Of a stretch of DNA of 64,000 bases, positions 1,156 to 17,609 are shown one piece after another. The first letter of the stretch is position 1; the number at the start of each line of letters is the position of its first letter. The stretch spans positions 248,001-312,000 of the forward strand of contig JBBPEB010000007.1 of assembly GCA_039096225.1 (NCBI GenBank). Reading direction: 5' to 3'. Made by a program: the position numbers and the translations under genes. The stretch is from Blastocystis sp. Blastoise (Eukaryota; Protista; Bigyra: Opalinata). A model generated the notes under the pieces. The model was not told where the DNA came from and searched no databases. It saw nothing but the letters and a program-made list of their open reading frames with translations.

Positions 1156-4100
1156 ATGTCAGAAATAATAAATGAAATTAAGTGTGATCAAGAAAAACTA
1201 GGTATTCTTCTTATTATTCTATTATATTTGAACTATACATAATTAATATAGTTGATTTTATCTTTCAAGATGAGACTAGAATTAAAATTTCAGTGTCATT
1301 TCTTAATAATTATCCCGAATCATTGCTTTCATTAATCTATTTAAATAAAGCAAATTATTTGAAAGATGAAGATGCATATTTTGTTGATTCTCCTACTCTT
1401 CATATCGATAGAATTGTATTATATATGAAAAACGAACTATCTCTGGATACTTTGTCATTTACAGATATATTAGATCTATATTCTGGATTAAAACATTTCT
1501 TTGCTAGTTCATTTCTTGAATATCAAATGAAAATATATGATTATTTGATTTTAAGTATGCAAGAATTCATTGAACAACATGAATGTGGAATGTAATATAT
1601 ATATGTATATATATGTTATATAATATAATAATTGTGGTGATTTATTTGAATTTGATAAAGAAAAGGAATTAACTATTAATAGTATATTATAGAATTCTTT
1701 TCATTTCTCTATTTTTATAGATATATTTACAGAAGAAAGAAACTTATTATTTCAAAAATATTCAAAACTATTTGAGATTTTTAAAGTTACAACAGTTGTT
1801 TTACAATGTATATATATATTATAATATATGTTTATATATATATAGATGATTTTGATGATAGGACTCCTTATGAATATATATATCCCTCCAATTTACATGA
1901 ATTATTTCCTTCTAAAAATCAATATAAAATAAATAGTATGAATATGTAATATAGTATTATATATATATAGTGTCTTATTATCCTCAGAATAAAACTATAC
2001 AATAGATTCTAAAAAATATGATAATAATGATAATCATTATAATGAATATAGTCGTAGTTATTACTCACAACATTACCCTGAATCGTTTGAAAACTATAAA
2101 AATGAACATGAAGAAATGGCTTTCAATCATTCATTTATGAATAAAGATGATAATAAAGAAGATAATAAAGAAGAAATTATACCTTTAAATACAAATAATG
2201 AAATACACTCTTTGAAAGAAGAAGAAAAATCATATTTATATTATGAAATTGATGATTATTATTCCCGTGAATATAATGAGAAACAAAAAGAATTAGAGAA
2301 AAATGATGCTGATATTAAAAAGAAGAAGAAAACAATTAGCTATATTTTCTATTATATAAATAATGAAAATAGTAAATTATATCTATATATATCTTATTAA
2401 TATATATATATAGTTCGTGATATTTTGCATCCAATTTTAGAGTAAAAATATAGACACTATTATTTATAGTTCTATTTTAAATCTTTTTTACTCTGTAACA
2501 ATAATTTAAATATATAAATGTATATAGATATTCAAGTGATGAATGTTATGAAATCTTTAATTATATACTTAATATGCCTATATGTAAACAAATACAAGAA
2601 ATAAAAACAAAATGTATATATATAGAATTCTATTTCTTCTTCTTATTATTATTATATAGCAAGACAAAAAGAAATAATAAATCCAGAAATGCATCCACTT
2701 TTAAAGCATTAAAGAATGGAATATTTGATCATATTTATATATTTAATATTCTTAATTGTATATTTATATATATTGTTATAATAATAATATATATATTAAA
2801 TCTATATATATGTTTAGATATTTAAAGTAAATTCTATTCAAAATATCAAAAATTAATACAAGAAATTATAAGTACACATATTTTTGATAATGTTACAACT
2901 ATAGAAATTAATGGTATATATATATTATATTTATAATTATATTTTCTATATATAGGTGATCATACAAATCAATGTGATATAGAATTTCAAATTGAATTAC
3001 TTCATTTCTTTACAAGAATTCATTTCCCAAAGATATCTATATATGATCTTAGTAAATATTATTGTTGTTGTCCATACGATACTAAATCCAGATTTACAAA
3101 ATATTTAGTACCCTATTCACTTTTAGAATTAATAGATATTATATATATAAAGCATTCAAACTTATATAAGAATACATTTCCTATAAATGTAGAATCATTA
3201 GAAACTATTTTTCAAGTGAAGAAACATCATGATATTACTATTCAATGTATATATATATGATTATGATTTTAAATAATAATGATAATAATACTATTTAGCA
3301 TATATATTAATTGATACATTTGATGAATTAATGAAAATAGTATTATATTCAGGATTATTGATTGATTATGACGTTTATTTTGATTTTATATTATTATATA
3401 TATATAATTATTATATATTATTTATTTATATAGTTGATGATATATCTAAAAGTCTCAGTGATTATTCACTTATTGATTTGAACTTATATCATTCTAAATT
3501 CATTGATGTCGGTATATATTTATTTTATATATATTATTTATATTAAGATAATATATTTTTTATTGAAATACTATATTTATGATAGAATATTCAATATTTA
3601 AAATTAAATTATTATAATATAATATATATAGAAGCTAATATTACAAATTATACTATATTACACAGGATGCAATGTATATGTGAACGAATCAATTGCGATC
3701 ATTTAGAAGCAATATCTATTCACTGTAATCATTTATTATTCTTTTCTTTATATATATATATATATAGTAATTGATATTATAGATGAAACAATAAATGAGT
3801 ATTATAATGAATATATATCATTCTTATCAACATGTAATTATACTACTGTGAATAAATTAACAATAGGTATATATATTAAAATTATAAACAATGAATATTG
3901 ATTATATATAGATAAACATCAATCTTATTTTTCATCATTTGAAACACCTTATTTACAATATATAAAGGAAATTAATGATGTTTTTTATAAATTCTTTTTA
4001 TTATTTTCAAATAATATTCAATATATATATATTTCAGGTATATATACTATTTTTATTCTATTTCAAAATATTAAATATAATTTACATATATAGATTTTAT

Positions 4101-12060: not shown

Positions 12061-12558
12061 TACCTTTTATATGCATTTCTTTTTTATTTGAACTGTATAA
12101 ATCCAAAGTCATAGTTAATTTAACATCTTCATTATCATATTCATATATATCATAATTGTTATCTTTCAAATAATTATAAAATAACTCTTTAAGATGAAAT
12201 AATAAATCACTTTGAAACTCATCGTTAATCACAACTGAATATTCAATAAGTGTTTTATAGATATCATAACTATCTCTCAGATTTAAAGAAGAAACATCCA
12301 CGTTATCTTCCATTAAAAAAGAAATCACTTTTTCAATATGAAAAGGAAGCATATCTATATAATAGCTACCGTCACCATATTTTTCAGAGTGTCCAATAAT
12401 ATCATAAAAGGGAAATTGACAATATTTCTCAATAAATTCCCTAGGAACCCATAATTGCGTCTCATCTTGAAACGAAAACAAATCTATAAGAAAAATAAAT
12501 ATTTCTAATTTATTCAAATACATCTATCTTTATTCAAACTAGTTTCAGTTGCTGACAT
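8692..12558 (-). CDS. Multi-exon BTB/POZ-like + LRR-like repeat protein (copy B1)
   Basis: MSATETSLNKD../DLFSFQDETQLWVPREFIEKY..DGSYYIDM, then short exons with IFPSLKEL, IFSNVTKL, NFPKLHII, NFPQLRS, KIPKLKEF motifs. Ends ELEEL* at 8692. Collinear with B2. Not every splice junction was verified. Confidence 0.75.
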
Positions 12559-13776
12559 GACTCTAAATAAACAATGTTAACAATGGAATTACAAAATATT
12601 TATCGAAAAGCATTTCAGATAATAATCTTCAACACATACAATAATTATACTTGATAAATCTAAAAAATAAGCAAAGAACAACTTATTAAACTTATAAAAT
12701 AAAACAAGAAAAATTATCAAAACAAGAATCTTTCTTTCTCTATATAATAACGAAATCTTTCCTCTTTAACAGTGGAAAAAAACGGAAGTTTTCAGGTTCT
12801 TGTGGAAAAGTACTAAACGATAGTGGAAAAAACGAGTGTTTCACTATGGAGAAACAAACAAAGAATTATGGAAAAAAAAACATTTTTGGTGTGTTGTCAA
12901 TCTTCAGTACAAGCTATTGTTGAGTCAAGAGACCATGGGGTAATCAATGTATATGCTATAACTATACTAACCTTAAAAAATAAAGTAATATTGAACGAGT
13001 ATAAAATATAATTACAATTAATAAAATGGAAATTAGAATTTGGTTCTTTTATTCAACTCTAGACACTATAGTCTATATAAATATATATCAATTACAACTT
13101 TGTAATAAAGTTGAATCAAACATTTTTATTTTTTGCATTATTTTATCAATAAGAATATCTGGTCATGTACATCCCTTTATGTATATTCTTATTTATATAA
13201 AATATCGGTATTTTATGAATTATCGATGCATCTCTATTCATGTCAACTTTTCTAAATATTATAATAGTAGCTTTTTTGTATACAATAGACAGTTTATAAC
13301 TCATAATGATAGATTTTAGATTAAATTTACAAAATATTACGAATATGATGAATAAATATAATTGTATTAATGCCTTATTAATATTGAACAGAACATAAAA
13401 TCTATTTATAAAGTGATATACTCTACAATTAAATAAGATAAATCACTGATAAACTGAATTGCAACTAATTGTCATATATACTTACAATCTCTCCTGTTCG
13501 AAGTGTGAACATAAGTATGTAGAATACAAAAAATATATATAATTTTCAAAAATAAGTATTTTGATATTATTATACAAGAAAAGTCACTTTTAAAAGAAAA
13601 TTTTGGTACAAGTGAAACTTGATGGACTTTGCTTATCTTTAAAAAAAGTACACAACCAAATATACACTTTTCCACAAGAACTTAAGAACGTCTCTACTAG
13701 AATATCCAAAATAATTCTGTTTTATGTATCATATTTCTATCAGAAATATATAAATATATCTATTAGTACTTTGAGA

Positions 13777-16700
13777 ATGTCCCAAGAAACACATTTATAT
13801 GTACATAAGAAACGAAAGTGCGATAATTTAGGCCTACTGAGTGCTAAAAGTGATGAGATATCACATATAAACCTTATTTTTCAAGATGAGAGGAAGATAA
13901 GTATTCCATTGTCGTTTTTGAAGAATTATCAAAATTCTATGTTATATAAAGCATATACGAGTTCTGGAAGTTATTTAAAAGATGAAGGGGCCTATTATAT
14001 CGATTCTCCATTTTTATCTATTGATAAATTAATGGATGTCATGTGTAATTCTGTTCCTCTTGATTCATTCTCATTTCAGGAACTTATTGATTTGAACGAA
14101 ACTTTAACTCATTTTTTAGGATATGAATCGATTGATTATCAAATGAAAATCACAGATTTCCTTGTAAAATTATTCTTGACATTTATTGAAGAAAATTATT
14201 GTGAAGTGTATGCTCTTTAATAACAATAATAATATAAATATATAGAGATAGTGAGATAAAATGCTATTCTAGGAAGTTTATTCATGTGACTCTAAAAGGT
14301 TTGTTAATATTATATATTTCAGTTATTATTTACATTTTATTAATTATTATTTAGATGTATTTACTGAGGAAAGAAACAAGTTATTTCTTCAACATTCTTA
14401 TTTATTTGAATATTTTAATGTTATAGACGTCATTTTAGATTGTATATATATATTATAATATATATAATAAATATATATAGATTCATTTGATGATAGAATT
14501 CCTTATGAATATATATATCCTTCTAATTTACATGAATTATTTCCAAAAATAAAACGTTATGTTATAGAAGGTATATTCTCTTATATTTATAAATTTATTA
14601 CATATCTAGCTTGTTATTATCCATTAAAGAAATATATACAAATAAAACCAACTGATATTCATTATACACTATTATATAAGGAATATAAACGTCAATATTA
14701 TGAAAAGTATTATCCTGAAGCTTATTATATATATAAAGATGAACATCCAGAAATAGAAGCAAATAAGATAAAAGAAGGTCAAGTTCATATATATCCTATG
14801 AATAATCACGGGGATAATGAGAGTATTGAGAAAGAAGAAAAAGAAATTCATCATGAAATTATAGATATAGATATTGATGAAGAAATAAGAAATGAGAAAG
14901 AAGAAGAGAAACCAGATTTATATATAGAATCATTATCTGATTATTCCCGTGAATATAATGAAGAAATGATAAAGAAAGAGAAGAAGGATTCACCGATTGA
15001 TGACAAAATAATATATTCGTTATATTATTTTATATTTGTCGATGATAATGAAAGTATAATATATATATATATAATAATATATTTATTTATAGTAATTGAT
15101 CGACAGCACCCAATATTATAGTATATATATAATATTTATAAATAATTTATATATAGTGACAGAGATTTTGAATCTAATGATATATTATTCTATATATTAA
15201 ATTTACCTATATGTAAGCAACTCAAAAATATAAAAATTAATTGTATATATGAATATATATATATTATAATATATATATAGTTTATAAATTGAAGTTCTTA
15301 TTACAATTAGAAATACCATCTTTATTATTATTCTTAAAAGATTCACTATATTCTTCACTAGAAATATTTAATATCTCTCAGTGTATGTATATATATATTA
15401 TTCTTTATACATATTTATAATAGGAATTTATTCATTTTCTTACGAAGAATTAGAGTCTCTTGAGAATATATATATGAATATGAATTATCAAGAATTACAA
15501 AAATTAACAATAGACTGTATCTTTTTATATAATATCATATATTTTAATATCCTTTATATATATACTATTTAGTGTGTGATCTATATAATAAAGAATATGA
15601 TGTTGTTGAATTCATCAATAAATACTTTTCTTTTCTGTGTAAAGGAAATTATAATACTGTTACTTCTTTAGCTATAAGTATTCTTTATAATATAGTCTTA
15701 ATATTTATTTTATATATATATTAAATTATATTTTTATATAATTAAAAATATAACTATGTTATAAATTATATAATTATTATAGAATACATATTATTATAAT
15801 AATATAGGTTTTCATATGGATATTGAAGAAGAATTAGAGGAATTGAATGAGTTAGAAATCCATGATACCAATAAATCTAATGATTATGAACATATTGAAA
15901 AGAAATTAGAACAACTTTGTGAGTCTGATATACATACATTAAATGATATAATCTATCAATTTTTTTCTTTATTCTCTGATAATATTAAAGAATTCAAAAT
16001 TGATGGTATATATATAATGTATAATTATATATGAATATATATAGGTCACTTTGTTAGAAATAGTATATTTTTAACCGAAAAATATACTAGTCTGCCTTTT
16101 TGGTCAAATATTCAGCATTTATCATTTGACTTAAGTAAATTTATATCTGCTAAATAGTAGTAGTTATAATATATATATATAGTTTGTGATGGTAAGAAAA
16201 AGATATTAAATAGTTTAACACATTTCTTTAAAAATAAAAAACTTAGAAATTTAATATCTTTAAAATTTAATTATGGACGTATATTTATTATTATTATTTT
16301 ATTTATAGATATTTATATAGATCATTTTGAATTATCCAGTTTTCTTGAGTTTATTGAGGGATTCACATTGAATTCTTCTTTTTCTCTTCCTTTTCTCGAT
16401 ACATTTAGTATTATTATAAAAAAAGTATATATAGTATATTATTAGTTATTCTAAATACATAAACTATAGTAATTATTCTATTATTATTTATGATTTACTA
16501 ATACTAATATAATCTATAAAGAGGAGCCAACATCCTACAATGTATTCAATTTCTTTCCTTCTTTTTTATATTTTCTTCATAAACCTATTACGTATATACG
16601 TATGAAAGATTCTATAATTGAATATGAAGAGAATAAAGATGAGAATGATTTATATGATCAATATATATATAATCAATTACAACAAAATTATTGTAAAAAT

Positions 16701-17045
16701 ATTATTGACCTCAATTTATGTATATATATATTATTATAATGAATGTATTTATTATTATTTATATTTATAGGTATAGATGAATCTTCAGTTATATCTAATA
16801 TTATTTATTTAATTATAAATAATCATTTTTGTTATTTAAGAAATCTTTCATTACTTTTTTATGGTAAATATTTATATATATTATAATTTATGTTTATATT
16901 ATTTAATATTGTAAATAAATTATTATTTATACAAGATAATGATACTTATACAAAATATTCATCACTTATTAATAATTATAAAGAGAAATATAATCCTAAT
17001 TTAAATATAACATATCATAATAGACAAATTGATGATTATGATTAG
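13777..17045 (+). CDS. Multi-exon BTB/POZ-like + LRR-like repeat protein (copy A2), apparently intact
   Basis: MSQETHLY..LIFQDERKISIPLSFLKNY..EGAYYIDSP. I could splice about 16 exons in frame to DDYD* at 17043-17045. Paralogous to A1 (FTEERN.LF, FDDR.PYEYIYPSNLHELFP, DYSREYNE, LPICKQ). Confidence 0.8.
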
Positions 17046-17609
17046 TAATGATTCTTTGTTATATATATATTTATATGAATCATTTTTATTCCCATTGGTT
17101 TATATATAAAAATAATATATCCATCAATATTTGTAATTTATGTATATATCTTTATTTGTTTAGAAAAAGTTTTGTTTCTAAATATTATATTTATAAAATA
17201 ATTAGAGATTTTTGTAAGTTATTTTTTAAAAATTTTTCTAAGAAAACTCATTATTTAAAAATGTTCAATTAAGAAATAAAAAACAATCATCTTTGTCATA
17301 ACAACTGCATCGAATTGAAAAAAGCATCCAATTATTATATACTTGCTATTATAAGTTATTTTTATATATTAATAATTATTATTCCATTATTTTCAAATTA
17401 AACAATATTTTTGTTTATATATATAATGAATAGAAACGTTATGAATACTTAAAGAATATTAAAAAAATAAATTAATAATTAAACGCAATAATATAAGAAT
17501 ATAACAAATAAATACAGAATTCATAAATTTTCAATACAAGTTTTCTTTATGTTCTATGTAAATTAGTTAAATAAAAAACTTTTGTATACAATTAAATATT
17601 CTTTTAAGG

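Follow-up and report, generated by a model that had tools for sequence, protein, structure and literature searches.

The A2 locus and its gene model

The DNA analysed here, referred to below as the window, is a 64,000-nucleotide stretch of contig JBBPEB010000007.1 from Blastocystis sp. 'Blastoise', with a G+C content of about 20%. Its forward strand carries a multi-exon gene, A2, which runs from an ATG at position 13777 to a TAG at 17043-17045 and is interrupted by short GT-AG introns. A2 belongs to a multi-copy gene family whose products are predicted to combine an N-terminal BTB domain with a solenoid of leucine-rich repeats (LRRs). The genes of this family follow a fixed collinear plan of about 21 exons, in which nearly every helix-loop-strand repeat is encoded by a single exon of about 78-126 nt placed between phase-1 introns; each of a few larger exons encodes two or three repeats.

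The product of A2 is the Blastocystis sp. 'Blastoise' protein KAK8810490.1 (P0001, 718 aa), which is annotated as a hypothetical protein and maps residue for residue on the window. Its gene model consists of 16 exons and 15 GT-AG introns, with the phases 1, 2, 1, 1, 1, 1, 2, 1, 1, 1, 1, 1, 1, 1 and 1 in order. Following the 431-nt N-terminal exon, the annotated exons measure 53, 87, 90, 444, 28, 86, 102, 105, 198, 96, 87, 198, 93 and 107 nt; the bulk are 86-105 nt long, and the outliers are a linker (53 nt), an acidic insertion (444 nt), a micro-exon (28 nt) and the two exons of 198 nt. An earlier sequence-only reading of this DNA had estimated that about 13 of the 15 introns are in phase 1 and that most exons after the BTB exon span about 85-105 nt; exact mapping gives 13/15 and mostly 86-105 nt. 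The six peptides which that reading had listed as repeat strands all lie at exon ends, but two of them, YQELQKLTID and WSNIQHLSFDL, fall outside the annotated mRNA, in two intact exon-like open reading frames (ORFs) situated within annotated introns and designated X7 and X10. The coordinates of all these features are collected in Table 1.

The annotated model also contains a 51-nt in-frame intron (13901-13951) within the BTB region. This intron is doubtful, because the 17 residues that it excises are conserved family-wide and because it occurs in no other mapped model; it probably reflects either an error of annotation or a minor isoform. An alternative A2 model, in which exon 2 begins at 14323 and a 111-nt phase-1 intron occupies 15054-15164, was ruled out by the database model, by a precise intron loss in the paralog L032 and by the conservation of the 28-nt micro-exon. 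The neighbouring paralog in the window, A1, corresponds to P0009. No Rfam match was found anywhere in the window. All full-length proteins that were searched or folded were database entries, and exons were joined locally for frame, stop and dN/dS (ratio of nonsynonymous to synonymous substitution rates) checks only.

Table 1. Exons and selected introns of A2, with positions in the window
Feature	Position	Strand	Length (nt)	Phase (in-out)	Description	Basis
Exon c1	13777..14207	+			Predicted N-terminal KCTD/T1-type BTB domain; annotated as 13777-13900 plus 13952-14207	AlphaFold, Foldseek, VIA-align
Intron 1	14208..14245	+	38	2	One of only two conserved non-phase-1 introns; missing to the base in L032	
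Exon c2	14246..14298	+	53	2-1	Linker strand	Exact mapping
Exon c3	14355..14441	+	87	1-1	Helix-plus-strand repeat unit	Exact mapping, exon-class comparison
Exon c4	14481..14570	+	90	1-1	Ends in LFPKIKRYVIE; most conserved repeat exon	
Intron after c4	14571-14609	+	39		Precisely lost in L034	
Exon c5	14610..15053	+	444	1-1	Helical and acidic insertion with conserved acidic motif	Exact mapping, structure model
Micro-exon c6	15093..15120	+	28	1-2	Conserved in 10 paralogs	
Exon c7	15157..15242	+	86	2-1	Repeat unit	
Exon c8	15281..15382	+	102	1-1	Ends in YSSLEIFNIS; last base T	
Hybrid intron	15383..15423	+	41		Deletion scar (about 790 bp lost); c8-intron donor region fused to acceptor region of the intron preceding c13	
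X7 (exon class c13)	15424..15516	+	93	1-1	Ends in YQELQKLTID; skipped in annotated mRNA	HMM match, E 2e-9
Exon c14	15573..15677	+	105	1-1		Exact mapping
Exon c15	15808..16005	+	198	1-1	Acidic helix plus repeat	Exact mapping
X10 (exon class c16)	16045..16134	+	90	1-1	Ends in WSNIQHLSFDL; not in annotated mRNA	HMM match, E 2e-12
Exon c17	16183..16278	+	96	1-1	Ends in LRNLISLKFNYG	Exact mapping, profile comparison
Exon c18	16321..16407	+	87	1-1		Exact mapping, profile comparison
Exon c19	16522..16719	+	198	1-1	About two repeat units	Exact mapping
Exon c20	16771..16863	+	93	1-1	Ends in FCYLRNLSLLFY	Exact mapping, profile comparison
Exon c21	16936..17045	+			Last exon, including the TAG stop	Exact mapping
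HMM, hidden Markov model.

Predicted fold of the proteins

The first exon is predicted to encode a BTB fold of the KCTD/T1 type. Its AlphaFold model, obtained with an alignment of 23 paralogs, has a predicted local distance difference test (pLDDT) score of 84 and displays a beta-beta-alpha-alpha-beta-alpha pattern. When the model was compared with 48,161 chains by VIA-align, all 50 rows listed were BTB or Skp1 folds, the best matches being KCTD7, KCTD17, KCTD10, KCTD1 and KCTD9 (Z 8.2-8.9, root-mean-square deviation of about 3 A, about 100 residues aligned), and the matches listed by Foldseek were all T1/KCTD structures (E about 4e-3). The three methods agree with the earlier assignment of a BTB exon at the N-terminus. 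A search of PDB sequences with the family profile yielded chance matches only.

The remainder of the protein is predicted to form an LRR solenoid resembling those of ribonuclease inhibitor (RI) and FBXL proteins. The AlphaFold model of a full-length paralog, P0002 (860 aa), which retains a block missing in A2, has a predicted template-modelling score of 0.72 and, between about residues 150 and 770, is built of regular strand-helix units. Among its top Foldseek rows (E about 1e-4), the named matches were all LRR proteins, namely NLRP5 and other NLRPs, TIR1, COI1, D3, RI, FBXL3, NLRC4 and CARMIL, and the other rows were chains of large assemblies. The LRR-like repeats that had been noticed in the letters alone find their counterpart in this solenoid. 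The units comprise about 26-36 residues (exons of 78-126 nt), and their strands end in L/F-x-x-L-x-I. Canonical LRRs recur in tandem every 20-30 residues and have the core LxxLxLxx(N/C)xL; the units here are longer, and their Asn/Cys position is inconsistent.

The exon boundaries follow the predicted structure. In the P0002 model, 14 of the 16 boundaries in the repeat region fall within about 4 residues of the end of a beta strand, a result matched by none of 20,000 random placements, and one exon of 285 nt covers three strands. At the level of predicted structure it is correct that one exon corresponds to one repeat with the border just after the strand, as the sequence-only reading had proposed; the P0002 model and the intron mapping agree with this part of the proposal.

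Most of c5 is low-complexity acidic sequence; it also contains (window 14850-14990) a strongly conserved motif with the consensus EIIDIDIDEEIRNEKEEEKPDLYI.SLS.YSREYNEE. The motif is among the best-conserved stretches of the family and could serve as a binding site.

Size of the family and its exon plan

An exhaustive HMMER search with the first exon recovered 27 proteins among 1.8 billion representatives. Eighteen of these map exactly on the assembly from which the window was taken and 13 are named hypothetical protein of Blastocystis sp. 'Blastoise', the union of the two sets accounting for 26 of the 27; the remaining match, P0026, is a 6519-aa ENA protein with an E-value of 2e-4. The 33-Mb genome itself contains at least 143 first-exon matches, about 20 of which have stops inside the match. 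As far as these searches indicate, the BTB-LRR family has to date turned up in no genome but this one, from a tortoise-gut Blastocystis. The paper describing the genome of the tortoise isolate (33.3 Mb; PMC12129017) mentions neither BTB domains nor leucine-rich repeats.

When HMMs of the exon classes were run on the DNA of 21 loci, out of about 143, the classes appeared in a single collinear order in all 21, and no duplication or reordering of an LRR exon was found in these loci. The same scans revealed no exon-like copies on the opposite strand. Per-exon identity between distant paralogs showed no outlier exon beyond the generally conserved classes c4 and c9, and exon lengths are position-specific, ranging from 78 to 126 nt for one-repeat exons. 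Several classes match one another in register in profile-profile comparisons, namely c17-c20 (90%), c10-c20 (79%), c18-c20 (79%), c13-c14 (74%) and c9-c20 (71%). Intron positions are common to paralogs of only 25-40% identity, and the introns therefore predate the expansion of the family. The dN/dS ratio is lower for the BTB exon (0.17-0.4) than for the LRR exons at the C-terminal end (0.4-0.8).

Phase 1 dominates throughout the family. The 18 exactly mapped paralogs contain 288 introns, 260 of them in phase 1, 27 in phase 2 and one in phase 0; on the family alignment they collapse to about 20 conserved positions, of which about 18 are in phase 1. The two conserved exceptions are the introns after exon 1 and after micro-exon c6. 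Outside the family genes, the window shows an ordinary spectrum (phases 0/1/2 = 25/14/12, about 27% phase 1) against 5/29/8 inside them, counts that come from a crude heuristic joining of long ORFs across short GT-AG gaps and include some false introns. The difference gives a Fisher p of 7e-5, and the binomial value for 18 of 20 conserved positions is 8e-9. An origin of the array by duplication, which is favoured below, would make the positions dependent on one another, but this does not call the pattern itself into question. The phase-1 bias exceeds chance.

In the window, the A2-type gene stands head to head with a gene of a distant subfamily, 'B' (12158-12475 on the minus strand with 13777 on the plus strand; first exon of B at E about 1e-4 to 1e-6). 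The same pairing recurs at close paralogs on contig 16 (1222569-1223742) and contig 8 (2182635-2183801). The duplication unit may be this divergent A2-type/B gene pair. In a heuristic scan, the introns of the B genes were likewise mostly in phase 1.

Differences between the copies

A2 (window 13695-17493), L031 (contig 23), L032 (contig 16) and L033 (contig 8) are four dispersed copies which are 93-96% identical over about 3.8 kb, L031 and L032 both being 95% identical to A2. A2, L031 and L032 lack about 790 bp holding exons c9-c12, which are kept in L033 and in L034 (contig 21), where they measure 96, 285, 87 and 78 nt. Both breakpoints of the deletion lie just past similar GTATATAT intron starts, which points to recombination or slippage between two introns as the cause of the loss. 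Because the exons are symmetric, a loss of this kind keeps the frame. The statement of the sequence-only reading that such exons can be lost in frame is borne out by this four-exon block, with the qualification that in A2, although the frame survives the deletion, the new junction with the following exon reads T|GA.

Introns were also lost. L032 is without intron 1, and L034 lacks both the intron after c4 and the intron at 15517-15572 between c13 and c14. Such precise losses independently confirm the splice junctions concerned, and the last of them identifies c13 as a real exon. Three precise losses among five close paralogs suggest that cDNA-mediated intron loss is active in the family. Informative sites among the four closest copies form alternating blocks that back all three possible groupings, a pattern indicating that the young copies are mosaics produced by short-tract ectopic gene conversion. 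Within A1 (P0009 intron 7, window 2614-2955), the reading frame of c9 is interrupted by a stop and c8 gives a stop at its junction. Both are passed over in the annotated model and are thus decayed exons in an otherwise open gene.

At the site of the deletion, c8 of A2 has T as its last base and X7 opens with GA, which makes the codon across the junction of c8 and X7 a TGA stop. X7 itself retains an intact ORF and intact AG/GT sites, and its homologue is coding in P0002, where it is fused to c14 through intron loss. The annotation bypasses X7 by means of a 190-nt intron, the norm in this genome being 36-60 nt, and a full-length A2 protein depends on this skip, which is what the annotation supposes. 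X10 is fully intact, its junction codons GGT and ATT are not stops, and close paralogs have no indels there.

Exons left out of the annotation

The 18 annotated models contain 77 introns longer than 95 nt, many of which include the exon class expected at that place. A total of 37 sense-strand matches to exon classes lie inside annotated introns, and 24 of them are fully intact, with AG/GT sites in the correct phase and non-stop junctions. Among those that are not intact, one has an internal stop and three have junction stops; most of the remainder belong to class c7, which is beyond the reach of the phase-1 test. By an estimate from base composition, a neutral stretch of 30 codons in sequence this AT-rich would be open only about 5% of the time, and the 24 intact exons are therefore expected to be coding in at least some transcripts. 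Two explanations offer themselves: the annotation systematically misses short AT-rich exons, or many genes of the family skip exons.

Over the family, 9 of the 226 possible single-exon skips would give a stop, about 96% being stop-free; with its T|GA junction, A2 falls among the remaining few. There is no sign of selection for junction codons compatible with skipping: the stop rate between exons i and i+2 is 4.0%, as compared with 4.1% for all non-adjacent pairs and 3.4% expected from composition.

Origin of the exon array and alternative explanations

Taken as a whole, these observations are probably explained by a BTB-LRR family built on a fixed exon-per-repeat plan, whose array arose by ancient tandem duplication and whose present variation came about by loss and conversion. 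Before the family expanded, tandem duplication of an exon-plus-intron unit would have built the array, a process in which the phase is necessarily copied together with the exon. Whole genes have since been duplicated to dispersed sites. Among the copies, four exons were removed when two similar TA-rich intron starts recombined, some introns were lost precisely, and short tracts have been converted among young copies. The proteins, as far as their predicted folds indicate, could function as CUL3-type adaptors or as oligomerising scaffolds, with a variable LRR surface binding variable targets.

Several results weigh against parts of this explanation. Exon 1 of A2 has no match to BTB_2 (PF02214) in Pfam, and the best score for this domain in the family, 16.2 bits in P0007, is below the cut-off of 21.4. 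With E <= 0.1 as the limit, neither the A2 exons nor ten full-length paralogs matched any Pfam LRR family. The fold assignments rest on AlphaFold models made from shallow alignments of 23-26 paralogs, and the full-length P0002 model has a mean pLDDT of 75 and is poor beyond residue 770. The similarity between exons is weak, and part of it could be due to the LRR motif that they share and not to common descent. Only a single cullin locus was detected in the genome. Exon and intron divergence are about equal (3-5%) in the A2 clade, and L031 and L032 share a frame-breaking 2-bp deletion in a TA run of c5, near 14726, with poly-A lengths differing about 30 nt downstream. These frame breaks may reflect genuine decay or may be indel errors left over from long-read sequencing; together with the equal divergence, they may mean that part of the A2 clade is decaying.

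The last point leads to the best-surviving alternative, which concerns A2 itself and is compatible with the duplication-and-loss explanation: A2 may be a decaying copy, in which the T|GA stop made by the deletion yields a truncated or nonsense-decayed product, the exon pattern being a relic of the plan common to the family. The proximal acceptor, which would define the 41-nt hybrid intron, looks normal, and the annotated skip requires an intron far longer than the typical 36-60 nt. In addition, the sister copies L031 and L032 carry the same deletion plus the frame breaks in c5, and exons of the clade have diverged about as much as its introns. However, A2 has no further stop or frameshift, the indels between close copies other than those frame breaks are intronic or multiples of three, the exons downstream of the junction have dN/dS values of 0.37-0.64 among the deletion-carrying copies, and the annotated skipping of X7 restores an ORF of 718 aa. 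On this evidence decay of A2 is possible, though we lean against it.

A further explanation, which builds on the modular diversification inferred in the sequence-only reading, regards the symmetric LRR exons as interchangeable cassettes, like those of Ectocarpus ROCO genes or human NLRP3, that are shuffled within or between paralogs, skipped, or both, to give a diverse receptor repertoire. Some of the data are of the kind that this would produce: the internal repeat exons are all 1-1 symmetric, copies with 95% identity differ in whether they have the four-exon block, close copies are mosaic, and 96% of possible skips are free of stops. Moreover, some of the skips implied by the 24 intact, correct-phase exons within annotated introns might be real isoforms, and the annotation pipeline of the genome paper favoured introns supported by RNA-seq (PMC12129017). 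The skipped exons may equally be mere prediction errors on short AT-rich exons. As for shuffling, the position-specific order is collinear in 21 of 21 loci with no LRR exon duplicated or reordered, inverted intronic exons are absent, no exon of the distant paralogs has an outlier identity, and exon lengths vary by position. A repertoire generated by shuffled or skipped cassettes is unlikely on these grounds, and a diversification comparable to that of the brown alga Ectocarpus, as had been proposed, finds no support in the 21 loci scanned.

It is very improbable that the phase-1 pattern stems from introns gained independently, time after time, in the equivalent sequence context behind every strand, as might happen if TA-rich elements that generate introns preferred certain targets. 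The family introns are indeed short and TA-rich, many starting with GTATAT and ending with ATAG, and the codons they split are biased in composition, with NAT and NTT dominant. But their positions are common to paralogs of 25-40% identity and so are older than the expansion. The exon classes also match in register, boundaries included, which is what joint copying of exon and intron would produce, and the other introns of the window, although of the same style, show an ordinary distribution of phases.

Comparison with known systems

The precedent cited for exon shuffling is correct in itself. In Ectocarpus, the ROCO genes, as well as NB-ARC-TPR genes, devote a separate exon to each LRR (Zambounis et al. 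2012, PMC3341825; 2024 follow-up, PMC11378527); the LRR exons are uniformly 72 nt long, are intermixed in exon trees and also occur inverted in introns on the non-coding strand (PMC3341825). Both cases are multi-copy families of stramenopiles with one LRR per symmetric exon, unannotated or inactivated repeat exons within introns (here on the sense strand), and pseudogenes. Unlike the ROCO exons, those described here are position-specific in length (78-126 nt) and occur in one collinear order with no duplicate or inverted copies, and the partner domain is a predicted T1-type BTB instead of ROC-COR.

The vertebrate NLR, ribonuclease inhibitor and Slit genes are related in design through an RI-like class of LRRs, and NLRP proteins and RI are among the best structural matches to the predicted solenoid. 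The exonic modularity of RI-type LRRs has been described for NLRP3, which has 171-bp exons and skips exon 5 (Hoss et al. 2019, PMC6642158). As in NLRs, the exon border is constant relative to the beta strand and skipping is neutral with respect to frame. However, NLR exons are uniform in length and encode two repeats (28+29 aa) with the border inside the strand, whereas the Blastocystis exons mostly encode one repeat of about 29-35 aa with the border after the strand. Alternative splicing has been shown for NLRP3 and is conjectural here.

The domain combination can be compared with two groups of known proteins. The predicted fold of the first exon is closest to the KCTD proteins, which possess a T1-type BTB domain (BTB_2, PF02214; CUL3 substrate adaptors), and as in KCTDs the domain is N-terminal with a repeat domain behind it, but the sequence similarity of the family lies below the Pfam threshold. 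The F-box-LRR receptors FBXL3, TIR1, COI1 and MAX2/D3 likewise have an adaptor domain followed by an LRR solenoid and are top structural matches of the predicted solenoid, although the adaptor here would be a BTB fold and not an F-box. The term 'BTB-LRR' occurs in no paper of the literature searched.

Significance of the family

LRR genes with one repeat per exon are already known (PMC3341825, PMC6642158); new is a family with that design in a new domain combination. Encoding each LRR in its own exon is a known means of keeping recognition domains adjustable, as in NLRs, ribonuclease inhibitor, Slit and the brown-alga ROCO genes. The design in Blastocystis is modular, with whole exons lost and no shuffling in the loci scanned. 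The A2 copies show it in practice, since recombination between introns removes whole exons and the frame is kept, yet a stop at the new junction is possible. Through the predicted models, a set of 'hypothetical proteins' can now be described at the level of fold, as a T1-type BTB domain followed by an LRR solenoid. The comparison also flags a systematic weakness of the published annotation, in which many intact short exons lie inside introns and one doubtful intron cuts the BTB domain.

A more far-reaching view is that the family comprises more than 140 cytosolic BTB-adaptor receptors, each gene yielding several LRR surfaces by means of optional symmetric exons, so that the 24 omitted exons would be real cassettes. 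We consider this view improbable. If true, it would represent a combinatorial recognition system in a gut protist, immune-like or aimed at the host or its microbiota, analogous to NLRP3 exon skipping and to the brown-alga ROCO genes. The family may explain part of the larger gene content of tortoise isolates, and it is a plausible candidate for a system of recognition or ubiquitin adaptors that evolves fast.

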